Positions 14,734-55,893 of a stretch of 64,000 nucleotides of DNA are shown piece by piece. A program made the translations under genes and the position numbers. The DNA is from Perna viridis. Lineage: Eukaryota. The stretch spans positions 36,084,001-36,148,000 of the forward strand of contig CM074517.1 in NCBI GenBank assembly GCA_037379345.1. Reading direction: 5' to 3'. Under the pieces are notes generated by a model. That model was not told the origin of the DNA. It did no database searches and saw only the letters and a program-made list of their open reading frames with translations. How positions within the stretch are numbered: position 1 is the stretch's first letter; the number at the start of each line of letters is the position of its first letter.

Positions 14734-14896
14734 GTTGCCGATGTTGATGCTATACTTGACTTCGAGGTTTATCGTTGCTGATGTTGATGCTATACTTGAC
14801 TTCGAGGTTTATCGTTGCTGATGTTGATGCTATACTTGACTTCGAGGTTTATCGTTGCTGATGTTGATGCTATACTTGACTTCGAGGTTTATCGTT
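14734..14896. repeat. 40-bp tandem repeat, ~4 essentially perfect copies
   Basis: Unit ATGTTGATGCTATACTTGACTTCGAGGTTTATCGTTGCTG starts at 14741, 14781, 14821 and 14861. Confidence 0.95.
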
Positions 14897-34670: not shown

Positions 34671-35182
34671 ATGTCTCAAGAAAAAGTAGAAGTTAGAACC
34701 AGGAACACAAAAACTGCCCAAACCATGGGTCCTAGGAGTACCATCATCACACGCCACAGTACAAGCGGCACCCTGCCTATGGCTGGTACTAGGAGCTCAA
34801 CTTTTAGAGCAAGTTATGGAGGTGGTGGCTTTGGAGGGGCCGCATCATTCGCCACAGGAACCGTTTCTGGTATGTCCCAAAAAAATGTTGCCAACGTTTT
34901 GGATACCAGAGCCAAGGAAAAGAATGAAATGAACGTTTTGAATGAGCGTTTTGCAAGTTACATAGAAAAAGTGCGATTTGTAGAAGCTCAAAATAAAGCC
35001 TTGTTAGCAGAAATCGAAAGACTGAAAAAGCAGAAAAATTTTGATGTTAGTGAAATCAAGGAATTATACGAACAAGAAATAGCCGATTCTAGGAAAATAA
35101 TTGATGATTTATCTGATGAGAAAGCCAAATTTGATTCAACCTTAGTTAGCTTACAAGATCAACTGGAAGATGAAAAAAGAGA
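34671..35182 (+). CDS. Cytoplasmic intermediate filament protein (protostome long-coil-1b type), exon 1: head, coil 1a, start of coil 1b
   Basis: ATG 34671; S/T/R/G-rich head; helix-initiation motif LNERFASYIEKVRFVEAQN; donor GA|GTAAGT, phase 2. Confidence 0.95.
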
Positions 35183-38100
35183 GTAAGTCATTTTAACAAA
35201 CGTCCTTTTGCTTATCTCTTAGTTTTTCATTCTTTTTTATCATTTTGAACTTTTTTGTTAGCATAAATTGTATGTTATAAACCTTTTTAGATCTGTATAA
35301 AGTTTTTTTGTGTGTGGCTCTCTACTAGCTTTTATACTTAGTTTCATGCGCTATGGCACCACTGGAACCACATGTATACTGCATTTGTTGGTTCTGTTGA
35401 AATTTTCTTAAGTTAGATTTAGTTTTGAATTAAAAAAAAATTGAATGGATATTATTAAAACTGTATAAAAAAAACTTCGGGAAAATCATATAAATACTTG
35501 ACTGTCGTTTGCAATACCAGAAGCCGGCCGGTGACTTTCACTAGTGCGAGAGTCGGCTTCAGAAACCACGCCTACTTTAAAATTATCCTGCGTCATCAGT
35601 TTCATTCAATCACGTGATTGCATATATTTTCCAAATGAATAGGAAAAGTCGAGCTTTTAAAGATAGCATAACTCATTGAATTATGAATGATATGAAAAAA
35701 AAAAACACACACACATTGAAATCTTTGACAGCGGGCTGTCAAGTAGTTGTTAATAATATGCAAGTCAGCAGACAGTGGAAGAAATCATTGAATGAATTTA
35801 TTTCTTTGGTATGCAATATATTCGTGATTTTATAAACTGCTTATCCAATACTAAAAGCTCAGGAAATTGAATAATGACATTTCGAATTAATTTGTAAACA
35901 TTTTATAAATTTGTCTAATTTATGACAGTTGCCATATCTTGCCGCTGATCGTAAATCATGACATATTGGTGTAGGTTTTTCTCTGTAGACATCACTTGGG
36001 GAAAATAGAACATTTACTTGCTTGATGAAAATAATAAAGCTATTCAAGGTCTTGAACTTTAAAGCAAATATTTCCTTCTACTTATGAAAATATAACAAGG
36101 TAGATTACACTTTGTGTTTTAAATCTACTATAAATTGAACATTTTACCTTAAATATACATTTTGCTACACAACAATGCACTTAAATAGGCGTCAAGCCTT
36201 AAATAAGATTAAGTCTGATTGTTCGTTCAGACCTGTCTTTTTTCACTGTTATATATACTTAAGTTCAAAAGAAATAAAGGTTTTATCTGTCTTTGAATTC
36301 TCTCGATTAATTAACTATTGTTACGAACAAGTCTTGTTGAAACACGAAACGGAAATTTAGAAGCTAAAAAAGCGAAACAATGTAAGTTCTCTTGTCAGTT
36401 ACAGCTTGTCTGACCTATCTTAATATGTAACATACATGCATTTAACTGTTGTTAACGTTTTGACAGTTATATGTCAACATATAAGGTTCTCTTCTTTCAC
36501 TTGAACGCTCAATTTAAAATTCGAAAAATGAACGTTTAATGCTAGCATTCATTTTTATTGACAGTTAATTCATTGTAATATATTTCGTGTTGCTCTCTGG
36601 GTTGACCTATCAGTCAGTATTTTAGTTTAAATACGGCAACAGGGTGACAGTTGAGCATTGTGATATGTTGAATACATGTACGTGCTGCGTTTACGTAACT
36701 TTCAGTAATTGTATTTAAACTGCATTTGCGTGCTTAGATCGACCTGCTATATGCCAGTTATGTCTGAGATACGTTCAGAAAGTACCAGTTATAAACTGCA
36801 AAAACCCTCGAAATTCGTTCGGTCTCTTTTTAAGCTCCAACGAATAAATATTATTAGTGACTCACTCTTTTAAATCTTGAATGAAACAACTCACCCTAAC
36901 CTGATGTAAATGATATTTTAATTCAATGCATTCGATATCCAGCTTCTAGATTCTAGTTTAATGGGTGTCTTTGATATGTGTACTAAAACAAATTGCCCAG
37001 CCAGAGGGGACTGTAAGTTATATAAAAGGCCGAATCGTATCCGGGTGAAAATTAAAACCGTTAAATTCACAGATTGAAATTATATGAATGGTTAAATCAG
37101 GAATGTTTATGTAGCAATTTAAGAAATGCCTCAAGATTTTGTCAACTTTTAGAATCTCGGTGTTTTAGTTTCTTGGATTTGTTTACACACCAGCACAGTT
37201 TGACAAGAAAAAAACACTTGAAGTTTCTTGGTACATTTTACTTTCAATTACTACAGGTAATGACCATACAAACACGATTGCTACGTACTGTTATGATAGT
37301 TAAAAATTATGCCCACATTGACTTGGTGTTAAAAGTTATTCGAGACAGAATAGAATTTAATTTTACATAATATAAAAAAAACAATATTGAATATCATTAA
37401 CTTAAATTATGCAACAATTAAAATATTATTATGATCAACAATCCGTATATTGGCTTTGTGTCATATGTAAATCTCCACGTCTTAGTTCTCTGGTTGGGTT
37501 AAACATTTTTACATGTTCTTAGTTTTTTTTCAGAGATTCAATTTGAACCAATGCAATAAAGCACCCGCTACCAGTCCTACCTTAATTTTAAAATCGTTAT
37601 GAAGTAAGATTCACACAGTCAATTTGTTTATATCTACATATATAAAACATGGCATGGCTATAAATGGACAAAACTGACCGATACATTATTTCAGGATGGA
37701 AGCCATGCATGCACAAGAAGTTTCTCGGTTTTGGTTTTGTTTCATAGACATCTGCACTAGGAAATTTTAAAAGAGAGTTTATCCTTGAATTTTTTTTCAC
37801 AGTGGGAAATTTCAATACAAAACCTTTGCAAACGAAGAATTTAGATAACACCGTTACATTCGACCAATCGTCTACAATGGCTAGTAAGCTCTGTAATATA
37901 TTAGAGTGGGTACTTCTGATCTTCTACGTAATGGGATTAATCTGAGGGAGTTGCCGATCATTAATTCTCGTATTTAACCATACTAGTCTTGGGATAAAAT
38001 GAAAGCCTGTTATTTTACGGTCCAAATTAAATATACATTTTGTTGAGAATTTAATAAGCAAAAAATCGGCTCAAGTAACAAAGGATAAGCCTGTTTTAAA

Positions 38101-38344
38101 CACCTGCAAGTCTGAATGAACAAGAAGCTCACCGAACAAAATATGTTCGATGTAATATGATCTTTGATTTTGTAAAATCACTTATTAAGTTTCACGTTCA
38201 GAATCTTCCTATTGCATTGGTTGGTTCTCTTCTATATTCTAACCTAACGTTGTATTCTACTCATAACGTACGTATCCACAATAATGGGCAACAGGATCTT
38301 AAGATAATTCAGGGGGTAACAAAAAGTCCAGATAATTTTGAAGC

Positions 38345-38943
38345 CCTGCAGTAAACGTAGCTCACCGTTCTATAGTGGCCGGCGTACCTGTAGTAAATGT
38401 AGCACACCGTTCTATAGTGGCCAGCGTACCAGTAGTAAATGTAGCACACCGTTCTATGGTGGCCGGCGTACCTGTAGTAAACGTAGCTCACCGTTCTATA
38501 TGGCCGGCGTACCTGTAGTAAACGTAGCTCACCGTTCTATAGTGGCCGGTGTACCTGTAGTAAACGTAGCACACCGTGTACCTGTAGTAAACGTAGCACA
38601 CCGTTCTATAGTGGCCGGTGTACCTGTAGTAAACGTAGCACACCGTGTACCTGTAGTAAACGTAGCACACCGTTCTATAGTGGCCTGTGTACATGTAGTA
38701 AATGTAGCACACCGTTCTATAGTGGCCGGTGTACCTGTAGTAAACCTAGCTCACCGTTCTATAGTGGCCGGCGTACCTGTATTAAACGTAGCTCACCGTT
38801 CTATAGTGGCCAGCGTACCTGTAGTAAATGTAGCACACCGTTCTATAGTGGCCAGCGTACCAGTAGTAAATGTAGCACACCGTTCTATGGTGACCAGCGT
38901 ACCAGTAGTAAACGTAGCACACCGTTCTATACTGGCCAGCGTA
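38345..38943. repeat. 42-bp minisatellite (~15 units, two 27-bp deletion variants) in IF intron 1
   Basis: Unit GTAGTAAACGTAGCTCACCGTTCTATAGTGGCCGGCGTACCT; accounts for the repetitive ORFs on both strands. Confidence 0.95.
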
Positions 38944-41900
38944 AGGCACATATAGTTATATTTAGGAAATAATTGAAGGAGGTTAAAATGATCTTCAGTG
39001 TATATCTCGCACAAAGTAGTCGTCATGTGTTACTGATTTGTGGTATAGAAGTGGCCCACATTGTGGGAAATACCACACTTGCTAATGACCAATGCAACAA
39101 GATGAGTAAATTGTTAGAATAAACTCTGTTCGAACTTTTGCTGTTGACTCAAAATTTGTAACACAGCATGAATTCAAGTGCTCTGTCGCACAACAATGAC
39201 CGCTCATTGTTTGCTGAGTACATTAAAAGGTTTAACTTTCAAATGAAGGTATTGTGTTCCGAATGACATTTCTATTTAATTTTCAAATGAGGGTGTTGTG
39301 TTCCGAAGGGCATTTCTATTTACCTCTAAATTAAATGTCCAGTTATGTGTTTGTAGTAGTAAAAATTCATTCACTGAATTGAGTCCTTGTTTGAAAAGTG
39401 ATATAATGATTAAAGCTAATTAAATATCTCAATTTTTATAACGCGTAAAGACTAGGGTGTTCTGGTGGTCTGCTTTGTTGAAAAAAGACAACCCTTCTGA
39501 TTGCATAAGGTTCGCCAATTACAGTGTAGGTTAACGCACCATCGGCGATGAGTGTGAAAACGTATGCCACGAACGTACTGTATTTTATAAATGTTCTGTT
39601 GTTTTGTTCACAAACATATTTTTACCTTGTTCGGTTAATCCCTTATTTCGCAATTTGTGTATAGTAAACCACAGTTTACCTCACATTTACATCATTCGTT
39701 GCATTGAAACCTGTATATACACCGTCGTGACGAATCGATGGAGGCGACATCCCAGAGGCAATATTACACTGCAATTAATTACAAGACATGTCTAGTAACC
39801 AGACTGAATAACCTTTATGTCTGCTGAAGAAGAGCGATCACTTTAATATGCAGGTTTTGTCGTCGTGATTATATGAAGTGTATGAGAAAATTTTATATTC
39901 TGTTCAAAAATCATCTTTGCTAGTCACTAAAACAACTTTCTTTGCCCATTAAAATACCTATGGACGGAGGGATCAAGGTTGCACCATAATAGCTCTGTTG
40001 AAAAAATGGCATATGTTCAAAAATAGAGTTCTCAACACCTTAGATTGGCCGCATTCATTTTGTAGAACAAACTACCCCTTCCCTTCATGGAAGAAAACAG
40101 GCATACCCGATCCCAGTCTAATTTATCTCAACACTCTTTCATGTTTAAATTTTAGACAATCCTACAATAGATGGGAACAATAAAACACAAGTGAACGTTG
40201 TTGGGTGTTTTTATTTATATGAAATGTCATATTCTTACGGTTGTACTTTCATTACAACGTATCATGGCAACTTAAGATACATTATATGCGTTTAACTTTC
40301 TCATTTATGCAGTGTGTTACATTATAGTTGTATCAATCAGTCGATATCTGGATATGTGTTGCAATGCAACGTTTCCACGTGTCTTAAGATGACTAGCAAA
40401 CTCTAAAAGAAAAATGCAATTTTTCCACAGGTGTTACCTATGGTGAACATGTAGGCCTGTATGTTTCAAGGTTGGCGCGACATTGGTTATTCACAGTTTA
40501 AGGTTCATTAACCATGTTGTAATGAATCAGTTTCTACAAAATTCAAATTGAATACTGAGTTTTACCTTTTATTGATAAATTAGCACAACTAATCGTATCG
40601 TTTTACTAAACAACAGAAATTAAAGTCTAACATCCACCATTGGACGGCGTATTTATACGCAACATTGACATTGTCGCTACAGAACACAAACCCCTCCTTT
40701 GGACTGCATATTTGTATAGTGCATTGACACTATTGGTACTATTGGTACCTATCACAAGCTCACTCGTTGCCGTTGGAGCCGAAACCATTTCTCATTACCG
40801 TCGTAAAATGAGAAAATTCTATTTTAGTTTCAGAACCAGAATATGATTAAAAATTCGGTTACCTTTGTATGTTAATACACCAACCACTTCGTTTTAATCT
40901 TAAACATGACAAATGAGGTCTCTTTTTTTCTATATTTTGTTACGTTTTATAAGTACATAGAACCCTCTTTTAACACAGGCCAAGACATTGAACTTCGGTC
41001 GTATAGATCAACAACCTCGTAATATGTCAATTCTTCTGCATAAATGAATTTCTGACTTATAGTGACTAAATATTTTGCCGTTAATGTTTAATTAAAGCGG
41101 TAAACAGTTATGTATCCTTGTGAACTTTTTTGGACCTCAATTATTGTTAATTCTTTCTGCTATCGGATTGTTGTAATTTTGCACTTTGTCTGGGTTTATA
41201 GAATACCCAATTCCTTAACTTGGAAAATCTATAAAATTTCCATTAAGCCATACACTCGAGACTTCGGCTTAACTTTACTGTAAACACCAGTGGTGTTTCT
41301 GGTTTTAAAATTCCCATGTCTTCACAGACAGAGAGAATAAATTCGTACCCTTTAAACTATCTAGTCAAAGTACGATATATCAACAGAAAACAAGGCAGTA
41401 ATTAAATAAAGTCAACGTGTCCTTTAATCGCTTGTTTTGAGCTTGTATTACCAAATAAATCTACGTTAATCTTTTTACTTGTTAACCATGCATAATTAAA
41501 TACATTTCAACTTGCTTAGTCTTGCTATCGCATTGTACTTATTTCAGTTGAGCTCAAAAAAGTAATCCGAGCATAAAATTAGTTGTTTCGACTGACTTGA
41601 CATTTCTGAATTACGAAGGTGACACACAATATGAACTACCATTTCTTTTAGAAGTTTTGATGTAAACTTTGTTTTTATGCGAACAAGGTTATCGTCCTAT
41701 ATGTTGTGCGTACCTATCCATTTCAAGGACTGAACACAAACGGTAATGATAACTGCATACTCAAAACAAAATGTCATTGCTACATAGAGGTATTTTTTTT
41801 AAATTGAATAAAATATCATTGGCTGCGTATTGTACAACTTTTATACTTTTATTGTATTCTACCGTCCTAGATTTAGTATGGTGTACAGGTGGACTTGAAA

Positions 41901-44616: not shown

Positions 44617-44803
44617 CCGTATCAATGCCGAGAAAACCGTAGATGACCTTAGGAACAAAATTGATAGACTGAACGATCAGATCGGAGGGTATGAAGGGGA
44701 ACTCGCCAACCTTAGACTGAGGATTGACTCACTTGAGGATGAGAATGCCCGCCTGAAGAAGGACAAGAAAACTCTTCAGGATGACATTGCTCGCATCAGA
44801 GCA
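44617..44803 (+). CDS. IF exon 2 (coil 1b, 187 nt)
   Basis: ttttag|C CGT ATC... RINAEKTVDDLRNK...DIARIRA|gtaagt; completes the phase-2 codon from exon 1. Confidence 0.95.
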
Positions 44804-45031
44804 GTAAGTTTTTTTTTTAATTCATATAGGATTTTGTTTTCTGTCAATAACTCAAAGTTCCTCTATTCTTGAATTATTTGCAGTTGTTGACGTTCATTGA
44901 AATCACTGCTAATTTTGTGTATGCTGGAAACCTCATTTATAACAAATAACCAAGAAATTTCCCAAATCATAAGAACCGTAAAATATGCAAAAAGGAAGAC
45001 AAAAACCGACCAACGATTCACTTTTTTTTAG

Positions 45032-45127
45032 GATCTGGACGAGGAGACCTGCAAGAGAATTCAAGCCGAGATGAAGCTCCAGACAGCTGAAGAGGACTTC
45101 AAATTCAACCAGAACATCTATGAAGCG
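45032..45127 (+). CDS. IF exon 3 (96 nt), followed by a GC-AG intron
   Basis: tttttag|DLDEETCKRIQAEMKLQTAEEDFKFNQNIYEA|GCAAGT. Confidence 0.9.
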
Positions 45128-45365
45128 GCAAGTTAAATTTGATTAATATAAAAGAATTATTAAAAGAGAGACAACTCGGATGTTATTAATAGGATATTTT
45201 CGTATCAAGCTAGACAACTCTAACGTAAATATGATTTAAACCAAAAAAAATTGATTACATGAACACTCTTATATAAAACTAATATTTTACTGAGAATCAA
45301 TGATATATCTTTTTGAATGATTCAGAACAAACATTGGTTTATTTCATTGACTTCTCTTCAATTAG

Positions 45366-45527
45366 GAAATTGCGGAACTCCGCGCTATGTTGGACAAGGA
45401 TAAGAGCATTGAGATGAAGGACATCTGGAAGGGTGAAATCCAAAAGGCTATCAGCGAACTCCAGGCCCAATATGCTGCTGAGTTGGATAGAATGCAGGGT
45501 GATATGCAGAAGAACTTCGAGATGCAG
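45366..45527 (+). CDS. IF exon 4 (162 nt; end of coil 1b, L12, start of coil 2)
   Basis: attag|EIAELRAMLDKDK...AISELQAQY...NFEMQ|gtattt. Confidence 0.93.
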
Positions 45528-45754
45528 GTATTTAGACAGTAACAGTAAATAACATGCTGAATGAAAACAAGTTTCTCCTAAATTGTCAAAAATCTTATAT
45601 TTTTAAACATTTTTTAAATGAAAACCTGCTTTTATGCAATTTTGCTATGCAAAGCAAAATTTAAACCCAGGAACTATTATTAAATACATCATCTTCAATA
45701 ATAATTGAAGATTTACATAAAAACGGTTGCTTTACCTATAACACCAAATTTCAG

Positions 45755-45880
45755 TTGAATGAGATGAAGGCTGGAGTCAACAGAGACAATATGGAAGCTC
45801 TATCTGCCCGGGAGGAAAGCAAGAAAGTTAAAGGAAAACTGTCTGAGCTACAGCCACTCATCAACCAGCTCCAGGCTGAG
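45755..45880 (+). CDS. IF exon 5 (126 nt; coil 2)
   Basis: tttcag|LNEMKAGVNRDNMEALSAREESKK...QLQAE|gtaaga. Confidence 0.93.
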
Positions 45881-46180
45881 GTAAGATCATAAAGACAATG
45901 GCATCTCATTATAATTTTGAATTTATCTTGATAAATATGTATAGTTAATAAATTCTAAACCTACTTACTTTAAGGATTTAAGTATAAAAATATAGAAACT
46001 TATATTTTCAATTCATGAATTTAATAAGGAAACATACACTAAAGCAAAGAATTTACAAAAGTTGAAAAGATTTAGATTGTACATATGATATTTTCCTTAT
46101 TTTCAATATTTCTTTTTTTGATGATAGAAATATAATTTGTTAAACAAAGCTGAACTGTCATGTCAAACTATTTACCACAG

Positions 46181-46401
46181 AATGCCATGCTGAAGTCAAG
46201 ATTGGATGCTCTACAAATCCAATATGATGATGAGTGCCGTGAACACGAAGAAGATAGACTCAAGTTGGAATCCCAGATCCAAAAACTCTCCAGTGAGTTG
46301 GAGAGCATTCTCAGAGAGCTCCAAATTCTCCAGGATGCCAAGCTCTCATTGGAGCTTGAGATCTCCTGCTACAGAAAACTGTTGGAGTCAGAGGAACAGA
46401 G
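46181..46401 (+). CDS. IF exon 6 (221 nt; end of coil 2)
   Basis: ccacag|NAMLKSRL...LQDAKLSLELEISCYRKLLESEEQ; IF helix-termination motif; donor AG|gtaagt. Confidence 0.95.
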
Positions 46402-46944
46402 GTAAGTCGTGCACTTACATAGTCATAGTGTTTGGTAATCCCAAGTACAGTCAATTCAACATCAATTGTGTTTCATAGTTTGTTTTTTTTTAAATCAAGA
46501 ACAACTGATATATAATCATTGAGAATCAATGGTTAGAGTAGTTTTACTATATATGTTGTTTTGTTTTGTCAGTTACAAGTAACAAATTTTATTGGTTGAT
46601 TGTATTGGTTTTATTATTAAATTATTGTACAAATGTTTTTGAAATGGTCATGAAATGGCCAATAATAATACTCAAGAAGCCCATAATGAATAGGTTTTAC
46701 ACATTTTTTGTCAAAATATGTACTCATAGAAGAACAACATAGTGGAAAATAATTTTTTCCCTAAAATCACGTAATTCTTGAAATACAGAATTTTTTGTAT
46801 TGCTTGGTTCAAATTTTCAAATTCTGGTCTTGTAAACCAAATTTGAGAAATACGTTTCACTTGATTGCAGGCATTTAGGTTTAATATCATGAAGTGCGAG
46901 TCAACCATAAACCATCCAAAACACGTTGGTTAATTTAATTTCAG

Positions 46945-47051
46945 CTTGAAACGTGTCGTTGAGGAATCCAGTGGAGCTAGGAGCAGTGGAGCTCAGCTCC
47001 TTTCCGACATGATTGTCACCAAGGGAGGCAGTGAGGCCTCACAGAAAAGCA
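46945..47051 (+). CDS. IF exon 7 (start of tail); read-through to TAG at 47054-47056 gives a tailless 471-aa isoform
   Basis: tttcag|C LKRVVEESSGARSSGAQLLSDMIVTKGGSEASQKS A|GTTAGT, phase 1; unspliced it reads AGT TAG TAA. Confidence 0.9.
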
Positions 47052-47456
47052 GTTAGTAACCCATTTCACATTTTGTGACTGTCATATCAACGTGTGATAT
47101 GCATACAGAAAATTGTAGTGTTTAATGTAGTTATTATTGAACGTCATTTTTGTGCCTATTTTCATCTTGCCTAACATGAATTTTAACCATTTTTTACGTA
47201 AAGACAGTGCTACAATAGTGCAATTTTAAACGCATGCAATATAGTATTGTGCAGTACAGCATTGGACCTTGATATACAGTTATTTATCTTTAAAACGATC
47301 AATGTGGACACCTAGCTTGATTTTTATATGTAGTCCTAGTACAACTTTGTGATAATAGTTTGAATGCTAAAACAGTACTTTTTTATGCAATTAGCTTTGT
47401 TAATCGTATATAATATTCATCAATATGCTTGTTAATTATATCTTGATGCATAGACA

Positions 47457-47462
47457 AATAAA
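47457..47462 (+). terminator. Candidate poly(A) signal for the tailless IF isoform
   Basis: AATAAA about 400 nt after the read-through stop; AT-rich background lowers specificity. Confidence 0.4.
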
Positions 47463-49453
47463 ATGTCTAAATCATATATCTATTCTTATATCACGTGACA
47501 TGCAATTTTGGCAAAAGATCTCAGGTTTATTTTTATTATATTCCTCGTAGTTCGCCAAGAGAAACTGAGTAATTGTATTAATCATCATACAATCTCGTCC
47601 ATTTCAATTTGTTTATCTTGCTTTTGAAACCTTTCTTCCTCCAAATTCAACCAATCCTTATTGAATGGAAACGGTGTTTAAAGAGCTTTGATTTAGGTAA
47701 TAGTCTTATTCGGGGTTATATGAAGCCTAAAGATGTCTACCATTTTCTGTATGTTGTCAATATGTATTAATGTGAAACAAAACCTAGTAGTTTCTGTATT
47801 TTCGATTTACTTTTCTTTGAGCATTGTTTTCATACAAATTGAGAATTTTATGATCATATCAATATTTATGCACTGCAACATTATCTGCTTAAAATCATGC
47901 AATATTCCCTACCCGTTAGTAATTTAGAAACTATTATTTCAAACGTTTTCTTGAAAACAAAGTTTTGCTGAAATGTCACTGCTTTTGACATAAATAGTAT
48001 GAAGAAAAATATTTTTATTGTATACTAGTATTTATGTATATTTAGATATCTACAGAGAATTAACACATTATATTATATAACATAGGATCAGCTTTATTAA
48101 AAGTGTTCACTCAGTAGAGTAGATATTTCTGCATGTCAAATTAACACAGTTCGTACTAACACAACTTTTTTGCAAGTTCAAAATCTAAACAGATCTTTTC
48201 GCTTAAACCTTTCAAGTTTTGGAAATTTTTCATTCTATTTCCTGCAGCCTCAACTTTTTTCTACTGTATGACTGGCATATCAAACTGATCTACAAATTTA
48301 GTTTTAAAATTAAAAAAAAACTTGGTTTTTTCTTTGACAGTACACATAATAAATGTACCATTCTTTTCAATTTGAAGGATATTTTTTTTTCTTTTAAACT
48401 CAATGTCTTTTAATATGAAATGCAAAAATATCGTTGATATCTGCATTTTAGTTGATATGCGGTATTTAAAGAGATGATTCCAAAATTGAATAACGAAAGT
48501 ATCGGAAAATGGTAGATATTTTTATGATTTGGTGGTTTCTTTGCCAATCCAATGTACCCTTACATTTTCCATTATTTTTGGTGTCTGTGGTTTATCAAAA
48601 ATTCCTCATGTAAGCAGAAATGTACTTGACAAATCAAGATGATTTTTAGAAAATATCATATGCACCTTACACAATATATAATCAGAAAAACACACGCCTT
48701 CAAAGATTCCTTTATCCAAAGGAAGATAATAATTTACCATAAACAAGAATTCTAACACCAAATAATTCAGAAGACAATAAGCCGTAACCGGGAAACAGTG
48801 TGCGCTCACACTTGTTAATAAAGAGGTGAAAATGTGCGCTGGAGAAAGTTACGGGAATTAGCGACAAAATGGGGAGGAATCGCCAAAGATTTGATAATTG
48901 AGTAAGTTGTGTCTGTTAAATGTTGTTAATGAGCATATTTAGGTTTAAATTATTTTTAGCTCACATTACTTTTTGAAGTTTCCTATTTTATTTATACTTT
49001 ATTTTATTTCGTATATGGAAAAAAGGAATTATTCGAAGCAAATTTTAAATTCTATTTCTGTTTTTTTTCGTCTCTCTTTCGCCTTTGCTGTCTTTTTTAG
49101 TGTTTAGCTTGTGATATTTAAATATCCTGAATAATGACTTTATAAGTCTTTTCTAATTATTTAAAAATGCCAAGATTTAATTCTGACAAAATACAAACAA
49201 CTCATAAAAGTTGATTGTAGAAAATACATAACATACACTCTTTAGGTATCGTTGAATAACGAATTATTTTCAAAATATACGGAAACTTTTAACATTTTGT
49301 CCTATAAGTTAACGTTTTCATATTTTGTATGTCTTCGAACCTATGTTTAACCATAACATGTGTTTGTCTATATTTATATACACATATATTCATGTGATAA
49401 TAACAAGATCAAATATACCAGACAAATAACCAGAAATTACCGTTTAATTAGTC

Positions 49454-49525
49454 TGCATGAAAACGGTTTAAGGTTCCTAGAGAAAGCAAGTGCATGAAAT
49501 TTGAAATTGCATGATTTTGAGCATG
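49454..49525 (+). promoter_or_regulatory. Cluster of four (T)GCATG Rbfox-type intronic splicing motifs upstream of LTD cassette A
   Basis: TGCATG at 49454, 49491, 49508 and GCATG at 49521. Confidence 0.5.
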
Positions 49526-49771
49526 ATGTGTGCAGTGTTCCAAAAAACCAACACGGCACACTATTATGTAAAGTTACCCAATGGTAGAAAATACGGTTAA
49601 GTTGTAGTGCAACACAATAAGAATTCTACAGGTGACGTGTATAGCGCTATTCAAGACAGATAGATTTTCTATTCAAAATCTTGAATGGTGAAAATATACC
49701 ATTTCTTAAGACTCAAAAATCTTTTGTTACAGGATCTGACTAAATCTACATTTATATGAAATAATTTTCAG

Positions 49772-49887
49772 GCTTTAACGAGTCATCCAATAAAATCTTG
49801 GTACAAAGGACTTGTAGAGGAGACATCTCTATCGAAAATGCACAGCCCGATGGAAGTTTTGTAACCTTAAAAAACTCGTCAAAGAAG
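49772..49887 (+). CDS. IF exon 8A (lamin tail domain cassette A, 116 nt)
   Basis: ttttcag|GC FNESSNKILVQRTCRGDISIENAQPDGSFVTLKNSSKK|gtaata; LTD start motif G-D-I-x-I-E...PDG-x-FV-x-L-x-N; phase 1 matches exon 7. Confidence 0.88.
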
Positions 49888-50150
49888 GTAATACTTTCAT
49901 AAACTATTCTCCATAACATAATATTAGCCCATACTTACAGACTAAATATATTTCAATATAATCCAGGTTTGTATGTTGGTGTTGCCCGATTTTAAAGGTA
50001 TTTTACATATCTAAATTGGATGCAGATTTCTTTGTTCGTAAATGTGATTGATTGGTTGAGTCTAAATAATCTTGCAATTTGGGGTAGCTCTTGGGATCTC
50101 AGCGTAAACCTGTATATATTGAAAAGATAAAAAAATGTGTATTGTGTATA

Positions 50151-50239
50151 TTTGTACTATGGAAAATGTTCAGTAATCTTGATCTTTTAAACTTTCTATA
50201 ATAGAAAAAAATATTGAATAACATTTTCCACAGTACAAA
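50151..50239. repeat. 20-bp inverted repeat (1 mismatch) with 49-nt spacer in intron 8A-9A
   Basis: TTTGTACTATGGAAAATGTT vs AACATTTTCCACAGTACAAA. Confidence 0.8.
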
Positions 50240-51504
50240 CGTATAACATGGTGATAAGATATGCGTTTATTAGAATGCTACATAATATTATGATTGATTG
50301 TAACGCGAACGCATGCTTCAATACAAAAGCCATTGACAAAAATAACATCGTATAAATGTTGTAAAAGAACCGCTTTATAGAATGTTTTCATTGACTTGGT
50401 AATGCATGTTTTCAATGCTCAGGAATTTAAATCCTGCATGTTGTGCAAAACAGCAGCTCTATATTAACAAATTCGAAGTTGTTACAAAGGGAAAATGTAA
50501 TTTTTTGCTTTTGCAATGGAAAATAACAGCGTACAATCCACAAATTTTAGGTATTATTCTTTAATGTATTCACCTCTCACATATACCTATACAAGTATAA
50601 TCTTATAACTTATAATTCGATAAAGTTTAGATTTTTTTTAAATTCAAGGAAATAATTTTGCTTGTAGAAAAATTCTGGTGGAAAGGTAAGCGCGGTGTGC
50701 GTTTTCATGACTGCTAAAACTTTTTCTTTTATAAAGACAGTGGTTATCTGGGATATCCACTATATCGTACATTCATCAGTTATCATTCATTATTTGGTCG
50801 TATATAACGGGAAAAGTATTAAGGATTATGAGATTTTAAATCTGTTGATATCTTAATTTCTTCACTAAATAGATTTAGATAGCTAATTTGAGACTTAAAA
50901 ATTTAATACTAAAAAACAGACTTTTATAGTAAAATCAGAATTCGATAAAATCGTATTTGGTCGTAATTATTGACCCTTTCAATAGAAAACTTCCTTATTT
51001 AACTCTACCTAAATTCTGTCTGTCCATCTCTCTGATGCAATTAATGCATGTTAGACACCATTTTCCCGTACAAAAAATCGTCGCTAGAAGTACTAATAAT
51101 ATTAGCCTGCATGTAATCCATATAAACAACATGTTCACAATATTGTTTCTTGTTTTGATTACTGGTGTTAAAAAACATTTTTGTACATTTGAAATAATTA
51201 AATGTCTTTGCATTTTTATATATAGGTGAAAATTAAGAAAGCGACAACAAGAGATTCAGAAATATGTTTAAACAATGTCGTAAGATTAAAGTAAAGATGG
51301 ATCATAACGGTAGATCGACTATGCATTTGTTGAACTTGTGTATATATACGTGTTTAATGGTTGTTAAACTTTTTGTACACTTAATATTTCACTTCCAAAG
51401 TTTTGTCAATGAACGATTTGGTGATAGTTTTGTAAAGTGAACACAGTTTTATATTTCTTCAATGATTTTATGAACTTTTTAATGGATTTATTATATTTTT
51501 CCAG

Positions 51505-51618
51505 GACATCGTCTCAGTAAATCTTAAAGGATGGACCTTGAAAAAATCAATCAATGGAGTTAACAAACATACATACACTTTTGGAGACATTAGCTTATCC
51601 AAGGGCAAAGAAGTTAAG
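51505..51618 (+). CDS. IF exon 9A (LTD cassette A, 114 nt)
   Basis: ttttccag|DIVSVNLKGWTLKKSINGVNKHTYTFGDISLSKGKEVK|gtacgt; LTD motif L-x-GW-x-L-x-K...Y-x-F. Confidence 0.88.
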
Positions 51619-52080
51619 GTACGTACATATTTCTTTATCGATATCTTTAATCATTTTTTTTCAACTATACTAGTGTTGACTTGTACATTATTTAACATTT
51701 TGTTGTAAATTTTTACATAAACACTCAAATAAATAGACTTACTTAAAGTTCCCCATTATTAAAAATGATATTGAATATTAAATATCTGAATTTTATTATA
51801 AAATATATATATATAATTAACTGCTGTGAACCTTTCTCCAGCAATAATTAGTAGCTTTGTAATCAGGGAGATAAATTCAATCAATACACTTTTTTCTTCT
51901 AGGCTTAGACTTGTAGGGAGTCTAACAAATAAATAATTTACCAAAAGTTTTAATTTCGAGGTGTCCTTGTCACATCAGTTAAGTCTTCGGTGCAGTTTAA
52001 ATACTATTAAAACGGAGCAGCAAGCAAGTACATCATTAGCTACATTTTACCTTTAATTGTTGACTGCTGTTTATTGACAG

Positions 52081-52188
52081 CTCTTTGCGAAAGGGGGTGC
52101 AGACATGGCCGGTCGTGATGACATCATCTGTGACATTTTTTCCTGGGGACTGTCCGGTGCATTCTCACTGTATGATGACAAAGGAGTA
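52081..52188 (+). CDS. IF exon 10A (LTD cassette A, 108 nt)
   Basis: tgacag|LFAKGGADMAGRDDIICDIFSWGLSGAFSLYDDKGV|gtacgt; LTD SWG...L-x-D-x-x-G motif. Confidence 0.88.
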
Positions 52189-52524
52189 GTACGTATTTCT
52201 TGAATATTTCTTGCATATTACTTGTTAATTTACATGGTTATGCATATTCCTTTAACCCGATATGTTAATTTGTTTTTGGAAAAAGTATATCAATAAATAC
52301 ACATTATAGTGATTGTAGAAAGACGGAAGTCTATCAAATATAAACAAGTTATACATTCATTTTTCTTCCATCGTCTTAAATTTTTATGTTAATTATCGGG
52401 TGTAAACTATTAAGAGTTTTTTATTGGATTTTTATAAAGTTAAAATTTCTTGAATTTATAAAATCGACAACCCTATTTGATATTCAATATTTTTTATTTT
52501 GTATTTGTAACCATCTATTTACAG

Positions 52525-52563
52525 GAGAAAGCAACTTTGACCATCAAGACAGCCAACCCATAA
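52525..52563 (+). CDS. IF terminal exon 11A
   Basis: tttacag|EKATLTIKTANP-TAA; paralogous to exon 11B. Confidence 0.82.
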   Translation, partial: EKATLTIKTANP

Positions 52564-53353
52564 ATGAACAACAATGAGTTTTCAATCCAAAATATCAACT
52601 TCGATTTCGACACAAATTTTATATACTTTCGTGTTGTACAATTGCTGACATGATGATATGGATGAATGTGTGTGTGCGTGTGGAATAGACTTTGTTAGGA
52701 ATTGTCCTCATAAGTCAATATTAGGGATTTTTTTTACAATTTTTATTCTCTATCGGGAGACATTTTAAATATATAATCACCTATTTCTTGCCTTTTGTGT
52801 AAATAGGTATGTGTATATCTTTGTGTAGAATCTTTCGGACGATGAATCTGTTTCATAAGTTAATCACAGATTCATATTCGTTGAGGGTAACAATAGGCAA
52901 TCGAAGCCTTGAACATTGTTTACGTCCCTTAAAAAGACGTATAGAATGGACTAAATGAAATCACTGCTTTATTATATATTCTCCATGTGTCATATCTTGC
53001 TTTAGTACATCGAAATTTGGAGTAGAATTAGACGATTCGCAATCTCATAAACAGGGTCATTTTATATTTTTTTTTTAAGCAACCACCTTTATCATTCTTT
53101 CTTGTTATATATTATTAGATTGATTTCTTGTTATATATTATTAGATTGATTTATATATTTACCGTTTTAGCAAAAGTTCCCCTCTTCCCCAAATATGGTT
53201 GTGAGTTTTAATTCAAAATATATTTTTATATATCTTTGAAATTATATTTTGTTATGCTTTAAGAGAGAAGTAATTTGAGGCTAATTTTATATATATTTTG
53301 TGGCATGTTATTGTTTTGTTAGTTACTAGTTTCACAGTATAATGGTTTTATTC

Positions 53354-53359
53354 AATAAA
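53354..53359 (+). terminator. Candidate poly(A) signal for IF isoform A
   Basis: AATAAA followed ~12 nt later by GU-rich TGTTGTTGGTGT. Confidence 0.5.
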
Positions 53360-54395
53360 TATTTCAAAATTGTTGTTGGTGTACATACTTAGTTTTCGCG
53401 TTTTATGAAGTGTTTAAATAAAAGGAATCTGATTGGTGGAGATCTACACGAGGTACTGGATTGTGTGAGGTATAGTATGTACATTGGAATTACGTGATTG
53501 ATTCTTTTTAAGGGAATTATTTTTTTTTAAAATATTTTACTGGAGTCTTTACAGTAATGTTGAGAGATATAATGATGACTTTCTAGAATACGACTTGTTT
53601 CACTTAAAATATTTAAGTGTCTGACATAATAATCTAACAATCGGGTCACACTAACAATTCGAACAAAATGCACCATCAGTACCATGTAAAATAGCTTGTA
53701 TATCTAAGATGCTTTTAGATAGTTATGCATAATACAATAGGGTTAAGGTGGCAAATACACACCAGTGATCTTTGCACATGAGAATGCTAGTATCAGGTCC
53801 AGTAGCGTAGGCTTTATTCAACCATTGGTTACAAAATGGCACGTTCGATTATAAGTATAATTGTTAATTATCGTTGTTATTTTCAGGATATTTTTTAACA
53901 AGTCTTACCGTAGTGATTTTTGATGAAAAGTCATCTTTACCAATTTTTAATGATGCATGAAAAAAGATTTTTTTCATCTAACATGGGTTACAGCGTTGTA
54001 GTATAAAGGAAAAAAAACAGACACCAATTTCCTTCAATGATTATTGCATCTTGTAAACATTATCAAAAGAACCTTTTATAAAAACCATTTCTGCTTGATG
54101 AATTCATTGGAAGTCTGATGCATGATGTAATAAGGTGGTGGCGAATCCAAGCATGATACTCCTTGTCAAAGATGTTTTTTATCGATTCAGTCAGGTTTTA
54201 TGATGTTTCTAACTATAAAATCATTTTTTTTCTTTTTTTATGTTTCGACAAGATTTGCAAATCAATTACCAAACTTTGTAAGAGTTGCTATATTTTTTTT
54301 TTATATTTTGTCGTTCGTTTTCAAGTAGTTGAACAACATTTTGAATTTTAGTCTTAAAAAAAAATTTAAAGCAAACATTGTAACTAATATTACAG

Positions 54396-54511
54396 GTATG
54401 TCCACATCTTCAAGGAAGGTCAACTTGGTTAAAAATTCTAGAGGAGACTTGCGCTTTGAGAGATGTGATCCCAGTGGAACAAAAGTGACCATTAAAAACA
54501 ACGGAACAAAG
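54396..54511 (+). CDS. IF exon 8B (LTD cassette B, 116 nt)
   Basis: ttacag|GT MSTSSRKVNLVKNSRGDLRFERCDPSGTKVTIKNNGTK|gtgaag; same length and phases as exon 8A. Confidence 0.88.
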
Positions 54512-54806
54512 GTGAAGAAAAGAAACTTGTCAAATTTACTATAAGAAAAAGCTACAATTTCAATAGTTTTTTAAGAAAAAAAACCCCTCATAATTCTAGT
54601 AATAGCGGTGCACATTGTGTATTTTCTTCGATTTAAACAATGACATCGTGCTTAAATAAATCATTTTATATAAATTCAAAACCATTTTTAAATGCGATAT
54701 TATTATATGGCTTGAACACACCATCTAAGATTTGTATGCAGCCTCGATTGTTTCTGTTTTGAACATACCTTATTTTAGACTTGATTTGTTAATACTTTTA
54801 TTTCAG

Positions 54807-54914
54807 TCAATCAGTATGAGAGGCTGGAGATTGATTAAGAACATCAATGGTGTAGACAAATGTAAATTTAACTTTGCTGATGACTACACGATCGGAGCCC
54901 AAAGGGAAGTAACT
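54807..54914 (+). CDS. IF exon 9B (LTD cassette B, 108 nt)
   Basis: tttcag|SISMRGWRLIKNINGVDKCKFNFADDYTIGAQREVT|gtaagt. Confidence 0.88.
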
Positions 54915-55192
54915 GTAAGTAAATAAAAAAAATAAACTAGTATTTGTGACATTTTAGGTTCTAGACAATTAAATTCATTTACACGTGGTTATTGAATCAT
55001 ATTACCTATTAATTTATTCATAGCGTTTTTTTTATTTGATTAGAAATTTTTTTTTACATTTAAATTAATCCTTTGTCATGATACTTTTAAAGAATGCAAA
55101 TAATTAACTGATACTGAGCATTTTTGTTTCAAACATGGACTGTCCAAAACTAACATGGATATAATAATCCCTAATTCCAACTACGTTTTCAG

Positions 55193-55300
55193 ATTTGTGG
55201 CAAAGTAATGGCTGACGAATTGGAATATGGAGAATTGCTGGGAGACTTCAACACATGGGGAACCCATGGAAAATTCATCTTGTTTGATGACAAGAATGTT
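55193..55300 (+). CDS. IF exon 10B (LTD cassette B, 108 nt)
   Basis: ttttcag|ICGKVMADELEYGELLGDFNTWGTHGKFILFDDKNV|gtaagt; same length as 10A. Confidence 0.88.
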
Positions 55301-55760
55301 GTAAGTGGAATTGATTCTTTTTTTTCCTTTTTGATGATTTCCTTTGATTTGTTGAAACATTTAGTTCACAAATGTAAATAATTCATTTTTTTTCAATATT
55401 AAGCAACTTCACTCTTTTCAGTAAATTATACTGCGACATAATCCCTACTTTCTCCTACTATCTAGCATCCCGACTGGTATTTGATATATACTAGTCGGCT
55501 TCGATATTTTATGGTGAAAGCAAGCCCATGCGATCCAATATTCAAACATTTTGCTCAAAGACGTCACAAAGAAAAAAGTCTGGAGAAGTATCTTCTTGTA
55601 TTTCTTCAAACTTTCAGCAACAAAACTTTCAAAAACTTAAACTTACGATATTCATTACAATGCTACTAATGGCAATGAAAAAAAATGGTTCATTTAATTG
55701 AATTTTTGAATCATGTATTTTCTTTGTTTCTAACAATTTGATATATGTTTGTCTTTATAG

Positions 55761-55793
55761 GAGAAAGCATCAATGGACGTACAGGTTCTTTAA
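55761..55793 (+). CDS. IF terminal exon 11B
   Basis: tttatag|EKASMDVQVL-TAA. Confidence 0.82.
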   Translation, partial: EKASMDVQVL

Positions 55794-55887: not shown

Positions 55888-55893
55888 AATAAA
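55888..55893 (+). terminator. Candidate poly(A) signal for IF isoform B
   Basis: First AATAAA after the 11B stop. Confidence 0.4.

Follow-up and report, generated by a model that had tools for sequence, protein, structure and literature searches.

The window analyzed here, a 64,000-nt stretch of the Perna viridis genome, contains a single-copy cytoplasmic intermediate-filament (IF) gene of the lamin-like protostome type, all of whose features lie on the forward strand. Exons 1–7 code for the head, the rod, and a linker. Exon 1 (34671..35183) holds the start codon, the head domain, and the first part of the rod (coil 1A); it matches Pfam Filament with 71 bits (E 1.8e-19), and tblastn with Mytilus proteins gives 75% identity. 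Rod exons 2–6 (44618..46399) were located by tblastn of Mytilus and oyster IF proteins, which are colinear across the exons, and have the approximate limits 44618–44803, 45032–45127, 45342–45530, 45740–45880, and 46175–46399. The last rod exon aligns with Filament positions 235–313 (44.8 bits, E 1.7e-11), and both it and exon 1 exceed the 40-bit cut-off for an IF rod (PF00038), against which the Mytilus orthologues score 188 bits. The rod termination motif, YRKLLESEE, is found in ORF 46160–46405. Exon 7 (46943..47051), also placed by tblastn, encodes the post-rod linker and provides the donor common to two alternative tails; it ends in phase 1, and its last 28–29 nt are found spliced onto 49772 and 54396. 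Its final base (A, at 47051) belongs to a split codon that reads AGC with exon 8A and AGT with exon 8B, which is Ser in either case.

Cytoplasmic IF proteins of the lamin-like protostome class have no nuclear localization signal and possess a long coil 1B with a 42-residue lamin-type insert, and the absence of a CaaX box sets protostome cytoplasmic IF proteins apart from nuclear lamins. The CaaX box is absent here: the two tails end in ...IKTANP and ...MDVQVL, with no Cys four residues from the end. In tblastn, cytoplasmic IF proteins already named in Mytilus and oysters align colinearly with the gene product; NCBI calls the Mytilus orthologues ‘retrograde protein of 51 kDa-like’.

Two tail cassettes and their fold

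Downstream of exon 7, we observe two four-exon sets, A (116/114/108/39 nt) and B (116/108/108/33 nt), which represent tandem paralogous exon sets with matching sizes and phases. Every exon has AG..GT flanks, and a single terminal stop closes each cassette. Cassette A comprises exon 8A (49772..49887, 116 nt), which enters in phase 1 and is identical to its M. coruscus counterpart at 35 of 38 residues, exon 9A (51505..51618, 114 nt), exon 10A (52081..52188, 108 nt, with AG/GT sites), and the 39-nt coding part of exon 11A (52525..52563, stop at 52561–52563). The 3′UTR of the A isoform (52564..53375) carries an AATAAA at 53354, which is conserved in M. coruscus along with the sequence around it (53304–53364). 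Cassette B comprises exon 8B (54396..54511, 116 nt), which likewise enters in phase 1 and retains 24/38 residues of M. coruscus 8B, exon 9B (54807..54914, 108 nt), exon 10B (55193..55300, 108 nt), and the 33-nt coding part of exon 11B (55761..55793, stop at 55791–55793), followed by an AATAAA at 55888. The two tails are identical at 44/119 aligned residues (37%), with a local alignment score of 211 versus 29.7 ± 5.1 in 500 shuffles, and the B cassette occurs as one copy in the 723-Mb genome. The coordinates, lengths, splice dinucleotides, phases, and separate stops given in the initial annotation of this DNA were all exactly reproduced, its estimate of ~35% identity between the tails agrees with the alignment, and both of the separate poly(A) signals it described are present.

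Each cassette is predicted to code for a complete Ig fold of the lamin tail domain (LTD), a reading that takes its fold from the Mytilus orthologues. When the tails in the window were searched exon by exon, only 9A (LTD positions 34–65, 18.1 bits, E 0.0036) and 9B (positions 34–66, 12.6 bits, E 0.18) matched Pfam LTD (PF00932), and both fall below its cut-off of 34.3 bits, as would be expected when an exon covers one-third of the domain. The profile and structure checks proposed in the initial annotation were run on the full tails of the Mytilus orthologues, of which the B type scores 38.8 bits, above the cut-off, and the A type 25.5 bits (E 1.8e-5). AlphaFold models of both Mytilus tails have pLDDT > 90 and the same strand order, and the best Foldseek match of both is lamin B1 (3umn_A), with TM scores of 0.87 and 0.86 and an rmsd of 2.0–2.1.

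Splicing of exon 7 to either cassette

The splice paths were examined in Logan contigs from four public runs belonging to four studies. The RNA label of these runs is a guess, and they give evidence of junctions rather than of full-length transcripts, levels, or tissues. The contigs match the stretch at ≥ 99% likeness. The joints 8A–9A–10A–11A and 8B–9B–10B are present in all four runs, all with GT..AG introns, and contigs continue past 11A into the 3′UTR. Behind 55301, all four runs show a loose end, AGAAAGCATCAATGGACGTACAGGTTCTTT, which corresponds to the letters of exon 11B. The 3′ end of exon 7 lies directly before 49772 in one run (X2), while its last 28 nt lie directly before 54396 in two others from two studies (X8 and X10). 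Since the end of exon 7 is spliced onto both 8A and 8B, B is an alternative tail of the same gene, and one IF gene can attach either of two diverged lamin-type tails to a common rod.

No joint of an A exon to a B exon was found in the contigs of the four runs, from which rare read-through transcripts could escape; at the protein level, the tails are exclusive because the stop in 11A precedes B. These observations bear out two proposals of the initial annotation, namely that B splices to exon 7 and that whole domains are mutually exclusive, and the two junctions it had singled out, 47051–49772 and 47051–54396, both occur in the public-run contigs. Between 8A and 9A, there is also a candidate microexon of 18 nt (50668..50685, encoding KNSGGK), which has AG/GT flanks and lies inside a block conserved with M. 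coruscus. Mytilus trossulus isoform X2 has KSNSGGK at this position; no joint to the candidate was found in the contigs of the four runs.

In the favored model, splicing of exon 7 to 8A yields tail A in a message ending near 53.37 kb, and splicing to 8B removes the entire A cluster within a 7.3-kb intron and yields tail B. Both tail proteins are presumably made in P. viridis. Rod assembly would be the same with either tail, and the tail would alter binding at the filament surface.

Conserved elements in the exon 7–8A intron

Conservation extends beyond the coding part of exon 7. The block 46933–47287, which consists of exon 7 and its flank, aligns with M. coruscus over 372 nt at 74% identity and reaches ~236 nt 3′ of the donor. 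Left unspliced, the frame continues with Ser and then TAG, and the conserved stretch right after the donor (47052..47287) is a candidate for the end and 3′UTR of a tailless isoform. The donor, AGCA/GTTAGTA (the slash marks the splice site), is also found in Saccostrea, and oyster short products of 452–454 aa end in ...QKSS. Such tailless oyster products are plentiful in transcriptomes, with 107 member sequences in P0181. Based on the conserved GT-TAG donor and the oyster products, there is probably a third, tailless form that arises by read-through of exon 7 (...QKSS-stop).

Farther into the intron, the best tile pair of the whole exon 7–8A interval is a predicted 35-bp duplex between a 5′ arm at 47870..47907 and a 3′ arm at 49503..49538 (dG −43.5 kcal/mol, z −6.6), the latter lying 234–269 nt upstream of the 8A acceptor. 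In M. coruscus, 32 of the pairs are the same, 1 shows a compensatory change, and none is broken. The 3′ arm sits in a GCATG cluster (49455–49525), the window's only one with at least three such motifs within 60 nt, and three of the motifs are conserved in M. coruscus. The locus has the sequence features of an Rbfox-type RNA bridge, a conserved GCAUG together with long-range pairing near an exon. We observe only one strong pairing of the 5′ arm, which is toward 8A; the candidate pairing toward 8B is weak, reaching at best −25.8 upstream of 8B here and −25.5 in M. coruscus, which exceeds the tile background by ~3 SD, with many interior loops. From this comparison of two species, the intronic duplex, together with the GCAUG cluster close to 8A, may contribute to the choice between A and B.

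Alternatively, the conserved intronic blocks could belong to the tailless isoform, as its 3′UTR or as elements that control its polyadenylation, instead of governing the A/B choice. Conservation that begins right at the exon-7 donor is in line with this explanation, as are the abundance of the oyster tailless products and an element, GCATACAGAAAATTG, that is common to mussels and the single-cassette oyster. The duplex arms ATCATGCAA and TTGCATGAT, however, are absent from the oyster intron, and the 3′ arm lies ~250 nt from the 8A acceptor. We consider a role confined to the tailless form possible, though it is not the explanation we favor. The fuller version of a role in tail choice, that mussels switch the Ig domain on the filament surface, one tail conserved and the other fast-evolving, in a cell-type-specific manner via an intronic RNA bridge, possibly with an Rbfox-like reader, is likewise tentative.

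Origin of the two tails and comparison with known systems

The M. coruscus locus (L001) has the same order as the window, with A (116/114/108/36 nt) followed by B (116/108/108/36 nt). Automatic RefSeq models (X2/X3/X5) exist in M. californianus, M. trossulus, M. edulis, and M. galloprovincialis, and the first 467–469 residues of the Mytilus isoforms are identical before continuing into tail A or tail B. In M. californianus, X2 and X3 have the same first 467 residues and then one or the other tail, and M. trossulus is likewise arranged; the B-tail isoforms of Mytilus carry the full head and rod. B-type tails also occur in the transcriptome of a third species (P0001), while the oyster (Saccostrea) locus has a single cassette. 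In our tree, the A clade (branch support 88/88) and the B clade (100/99) group together (96/94) with the oysters outside. This topology dates the duplication to the mussel lineage, later than the oyster split and earlier than the split of P. viridis from Mytilus.

Across bivalves, the one-cassette oyster locus limits the duplication to the mussel lineage rather than to bivalves as a whole.

The two tails differ strikingly in rate. Between P. viridis and M. coruscus, cassette A has a pN of 0.106 and a pS of 0.834 (82% amino-acid identity), whereas cassette B has a pN of 0.334 and a pS of 0.733 (47% identity). The branch leading to the window's tail is 0.84 for B versus 0.072 for A, and the window tails keep 19/23 and 12/23 conserved LTD columns for A and B, respectively. 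These sequence comparisons indicate that A is slow-evolving and that B evolves ~10x faster yet is under purifying selection. The inequality suggests different partners for the two tails. With the same order and exon sizes in M. coruscus, synonymous sites that are saturated between the two species, and pN well below pS in both cassettes, the earlier proposal of an old duplication with both copies kept holds.

It could instead be argued that both mRNAs exist and only one tail matters, with B (or A) being a tolerated by-product under relaxed constraint and without a distinct role. The low identity and long branch of B fit such a scenario, as does the loss of 11 of the 23 conserved LTD positions from the window's B tail. 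However, B has kept its reading frame open and its exon sizes, phases, and splice sites intact in two synonymously saturated lineages with its pN far below its pS, B-type tails recur in the third species' transcriptome, the Mytilus B tail exceeds the LTD cut-off with a confident fold, and contigs with B junctions occur in each of the four runs. We therefore consider a by-product improbable. Far less likely still is that B is transcribed separately, from a promoter of its own located between 52.6 and 54.4 kb: although a 1.8-kb spacer with a poly(A) signal separates the cassettes, the end of exon 7 lies directly on 54396 in two studies, neither a start exon nor a spacer-to-8B joint was found in the contigs of the four runs, 8B, being entered in phase 1, has to take one base from an exon before it, and the Mytilus B-tail isoforms include the head and rod. 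An assembly artefact or uncollapsed haplotype, for which the tandem layout alone speaks, is equally remote given copies only 37% identical at the protein level, the same order in the independent M. coruscus assembly, public-run contigs at ≥ 99% likeness, and a single-copy B cassette. The initial annotation had itself named a separate transcription unit and a mis-assembly as possible objections; the former is contradicted by the end of exon 7 on 54396, and the latter by the 37% identity and the synteny with M. coruscus. We are thus confident that this is a single IF gene whose exon-7 donor is spliced to either of two tandem tail clusters duplicated in the mussel lineage.

Among the closest relatives of this arrangement are the RefSeq Mytilus models, which are orthologous and combine either of these tails with one identical head and rod, and which carry no annotation of what differs between the isoforms. 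We found no published account of mussel two-tail IF isoforms in the searchable literature, and the initial annotation likewise knew of no IF gene described as choosing between two divergent complete LTDs; the isoforms themselves already exist as automatic models in Mytilus. Among described genes, Dodemont, Riemer and Weber reportedly described in 1990 a non-neuronal IF gene of Helix (Cornu) aspersum with proteins A and B. It too is a molluscan lamin-like cytoplasmic IF gene with one rod and alternative C-termini made by RNA processing, one long (tailed) and one short. In Helix, the alternatives are reportedly a lamin-like tail and a short end, whereas the mussel gene has two paralogous complete LTDs, the short form being a third state.

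Alternative tails are also known from the squid neurofilament gene (NF60/NF70/NF220), vertebrate LMNA (lamin A/C), and GFAP alpha/delta. To our knowledge, none of these exchanges an Ig fold for a paralogous one. As in mussels, alternative 3′ exons change the IF tail and the rod is kept, but unrelated C-terminal sequence is added, dropped, or replaced, in LMNA after the Ig fold. The 3′ variants of GFAP are covered elsewhere (PMC3316583). One rod with either of two paralogous Ig folds, and probably also with none, amounts to a built-in comparison in which assembly is constant and the surface domain varies. The function of the LTD on invertebrate cytoplasmic filaments is, as far as we know, essentially unknown. 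If a cell-type switch by an RNA bridge is true, it would be the first Ig-fold swapping on a cytoskeletal polymer and a natural experiment on the role of the LTD in cytoplasmic filaments.

In FGFR2 (IIIb/IIIc) and Dscam1, mutually exclusive exons that arose by tandem duplication swap Ig-domain sequence and so change binding specificity. The alternatives in these cell-surface receptors are single internal exons, whereas the mussel gene has terminal clusters of four exons, each set with a stop and a poly(A) signal of its own, that exchange a whole Ig fold on a cytoskeletal polymer. In the docking/selector pairing known from insect mutually exclusive exons (Dscam and 14-3-3 xi type), every variant is preceded by a selector, and the selectors compete for pairing with a single docking site; Rbfox ‘RNA bridges’ were reportedly described by Lovci et al. 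in 2013. With these systems, the mussel intron has in common a conserved long-range pairing that adjoins an alternative exon and contains GCAUG motifs; it differs in having only one strong pairing, toward 8A, and a weak candidate toward 8B. This conserved RNA structure is a testable candidate switch. The mussel locus falls within known types, alternative last-exon clusters and alternative IF tails, and illustrates cleanly how alternative protein ends can arise when a multi-exon domain is duplicated in tandem.

One rod, two tail cassettes

A complete intermediate-filament (IF) gene lies 5' of the two tail cassettes. Its first exon (34671-35183, forward strand) matches the Pfam Filament model with 71 bits, the final rod exon matches the end of the same model with 44.8 bits, and the seven exons between 34671 and 47051 are colinear with Mytilus and oyster IF proteins. 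Within the 9.4-kb first intron, we observe a GC-richer minisatellite (38338-38955), whose repeated VPVVNVAHRSIVAG-like units give long repeat-made ORFs on both strands.

Both cassettes are on the forward strand. Cassette A consists of exons 8A to 11A (49772-49887, 51505-51618, 52081-52188 and 52525-52563; 116/114/108/39 nt), and cassette B of exons 8B to 11B (54396-54511, 54807-54914, 55193-55300 and 55761-55793; 116/108/108/33 nt); on re-checking, these are exactly the exons drawn in the initial annotation. AG and GT border all eight exons, and each cassette has an open frame with one terminal stop. With its end at 47051, exon 7 leaves one base of a split codon, which becomes AGC with 8A and AGT with 8B, serine either way. 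The two tails are identical at 44 of 119 aligned residues (37%), with a local alignment score of 211 versus 29.7 +/- 5.1 in shuffled sequence. Cassette B occurs once in the 723-Mb genome, and neither stretches of N nor sequences resembling human DNA were met.

Twenty public sequencing runs contain at least half of the window's sampled words, and junctions were mapped on 49760-55759 in four runs from four studies, using Logan contigs instead of raw reads. The RNA label of these four runs is only a guess, yet spliced joints are present: 8A-9A, 9A-10A, 10A-11A, 8B-9B and 9B-10B are found in all four, each as GT..AG, and the contig letters after 55301 are those of exon 11B in all four as well. Run X2 has the 3' end of exon 7, GGAGGCAGTGAGGCCTCACAGAAAAGCA, directly before 49772, and runs X8 and X10 have it directly before 54396. 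Since the end of exon 7 is found on both acceptors, B is part of this gene and either tail joins the same rod. This bears out the initial proposal that B splices to exon 7 and contradicts the alternative that B is a transcription unit of its own. The further proposal that whole domains are mutually exclusive agrees with the mapped interval (49760-55759), where none of the four runs joins A exons to B exons.

Contigs continue without a break from 11A up to where 8B starts. The interpretation of these contigs as A transcripts reading into B was dropped because their mean depths fit another reading, in which the A message stops close to the AATAAA at 53354 and coverage further on is at the level of introns; this fit is our arithmetic on contig means, not a measurement. 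Junction-contig depths in the four runs are 476, 491, 796 and 261 for 8A-9A and 3886, 366, 3024 and 3634 for 8B-9B, such that B is above A in three runs and A slightly above B in one. Contig depth is not a proxy for expression levels, and these values are only a hint that the A:B ratio varies between runs. At four intronic positions (51186, 51808, 54241 and 55325), contigs of several runs, belonging to different studies, depart from the reference with identical foreign letters; insertion/deletion alleles that differ from the assembly are the probable cause. In the 3'UTR of A, a short tandem duplication (53096-53150; two copies of ~27 nt) is a point at which the contigs of one run break.

Both tails as lamin tail domains

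To assign the tails, Pfam was run exon by exon on the window sequence, full-length Mytilus proteins served as proxies for complete tails, and the whole-genome search for the lamin tail domain (LTD) covered exon-sized pieces. Among the window exons, only 9A (E = 0.0036) and 9B (E = 0.18) match the LTD model, both weakly; taken singly, 8A and 8B match P_proprotein at chance level, and 10A and 10B match nothing. The Mytilus B-type protein reaches 38.8 bits at full length, over the 34.3-bit cut-off, and the A-type protein 25.5 bits (E = 1.8e-5) against the same cut-off. At the sequence level, the Mytilus B tail matches the Ig-fold chains of lamin B1/B2. AlphaFold models of the Mytilus proteins, based on a 52-sequence alignment, have pLDDT > 90 across both tails with the same strand order, and the top Foldseek matches of both are lamin Ig-fold structures (3umn_A, TM 0.87 and 0.86, rmsd 2.0-2.1 A). 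The LTD identity initially given to both tails thus stands in the Mytilus proxies, where B passes the cut-off and both fold as a lamin Ig domain, and is weak for the window exons one by one.

Across 52 IF proteins, 23 columns of the tail are conserved; window A keeps 19 of them and window B 12, and the near-invariant G, N, W, L and A positions are all kept in both. Neither C-terminus has a CaaX box, and charge and pI do not differ between the two tails. Between 8A and 9A lies a candidate 18-nt microexon (50668-50685, encoding KNSGGK) that is conserved with M. coruscus and corresponds to an insert, KSNSGGK, in isoform X2 of Mytilus trossulus; where exons 8 and 9 meet, oysters likewise carry GSQSRDK/GSPSRDK as an insert. 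Splicing of the microexon was not seen in the four mapped runs.

Relatives, selection and age of the duplication

Exon 1, used in a profile-free search, matched a transcriptome protein of 590 residues (P0001), and word-based searches with this protein led to Mytilus RefSeq models named 'retrograde protein of 51 kDa-like', with several isoforms. In M. californianus, isoforms X2 and X3 share their first 467 residues exactly and then continue into an A-type or a B-type tail, with 86% identity to the window in exon 8A and 59% in exon 8B, respectively; the M. trossulus isoforms have the same split after 469 residues. One further model, Mytilus edulis isoform X4 (P0158, 513 aa), skips ~79 rod residues (exons matching 45032-45530); it would break the rod and may be either an artefact of prediction or a variant that does not assemble. 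Searches with the tail region matched only Mytilus proteins and one Logan transcript. In the M. coruscus genome, A exons of 116/114/108/36 nt are followed by B exons of 116/108/108/36 nt, all bordered by AG/GT, and this matching A-then-B layout must be older than the split of Perna viridis and Mytilus.

Conservation and covariation were compared between two mussel genomic sequences, the window and M. coruscus. Synonymous sites are saturated (pS 0.73-0.83), and for this reason pN and pS are reported for cassette A instead of dN/dS. The low pN against saturated pS (0.106 for A and 0.334 for B) indicates purifying selection on both cassettes, strong on A and looser on B. In a maximum-likelihood tree of the tails, with those of the window joined from its sequence, as also for the alignment and the substitution counts, the A clade has support of 88/88 and the B clade, comprising window B, Mytilus B and P0001, 100/99. 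The two clades are united at 96/94 with oysters outside, and the branch of window B is long (0.84 versus 0.072 for window A). The Saccostrea cucullata (oyster) locus has a single cassette, and the next gene starts 1.6 kb downstream. Together with the position of oysters outside A and B, this places the duplication in the mussel lineage rather than across bivalves. The early suggestion of an old duplication under selection is upheld by a layout that predates the Mytilus split and by pN below pS in both cassettes.

A possible tailless form and the choice between tails

When the exon-7 donor is unused, the frame continues with Ser and then TAG. M. coruscus and Saccostrea have the window's donor context AGCA|GTTAGTA, in-frame TAG included (window 47052-47057; M. 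coruscus locus L001, ~14079; locus L005, ~17163), which is thus conserved from oysters to mussels; the window and M. coruscus also share ~240 nt of conserved sequence 3' of the donor. In oyster transcriptomes, products of 452-454 residues have the C-terminus ...QKSS, exactly as read-through predicts, and one such cluster has 107 member sequences. From the conserved TAG and these oyster products, a putative tailless isoform made by read-through seems to be old.

At its simplest, the choice between A and B requires no special device: the exon-7 donor selects one acceptor, either in the proximal terminal cluster, A, which has a separate poly(A) signal in a conserved block (53304-53364), or in the distal cluster, B. 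Against the saturated neutral divergence between the window and M. coruscus, a handful of non-coding blocks are conserved, two of which are mutually complementary. These lie 1.6 kb apart in the intron between exon 7 and 8A (47870-47907 with 49503-49538; 14855-14895 with 16640-16672 in L001), where they are the top tile pair of the window's intron, and could form a duplex of 35 bp (dG -43.5 kcal/mol, z -6.6 against shuffles; -47.5 kcal/mol, z -8.0 for the M. coruscus arms). Between the two mussels, 32 pairs are unchanged, one is compensatory (C:G to A:T) and two lie in gaps, with no pair broken; the oyster intron lacks these arms. The 3' arm, 234-269 nt 5' of the 8A acceptor, contains most of the only cluster of at least three GCATG motifs within 60 nt in the 64-kb window, and three of its motifs are conserved in M. 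coruscus. The 5' arm also pairs weakly ~270 nt upstream of 8B in both mussels (~-25 kcal/mol, ~3 SD above background). We infer that the conserved duplex is a candidate RNA bridge, which could bring 8A to the exon-7 donor or could mask or expose GCAUG sites. Another strong pairing within the intron (47726-47761 with ~48492-48552, -40.2 kcal/mol) includes a block 92% conserved with M. coruscus.

The two-tail gene is real, with good support from both RNA and genome data, and the functions of its tails are putative. In the full-text literature, where coverage of subscription journals is thin, we found no description of an IF gene choosing between two paralogous complete LTDs and nothing on the Mytilus two-tail isoforms, which are already present as automatic RefSeq models. 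Helix A/B, squid neurofilaments, lamin A/C and GFAP are known examples of a single IF rod fitted with alternative tails, and receptors such as FGFR2 and Dscam swap Ig domains via duplicated alternative exons.
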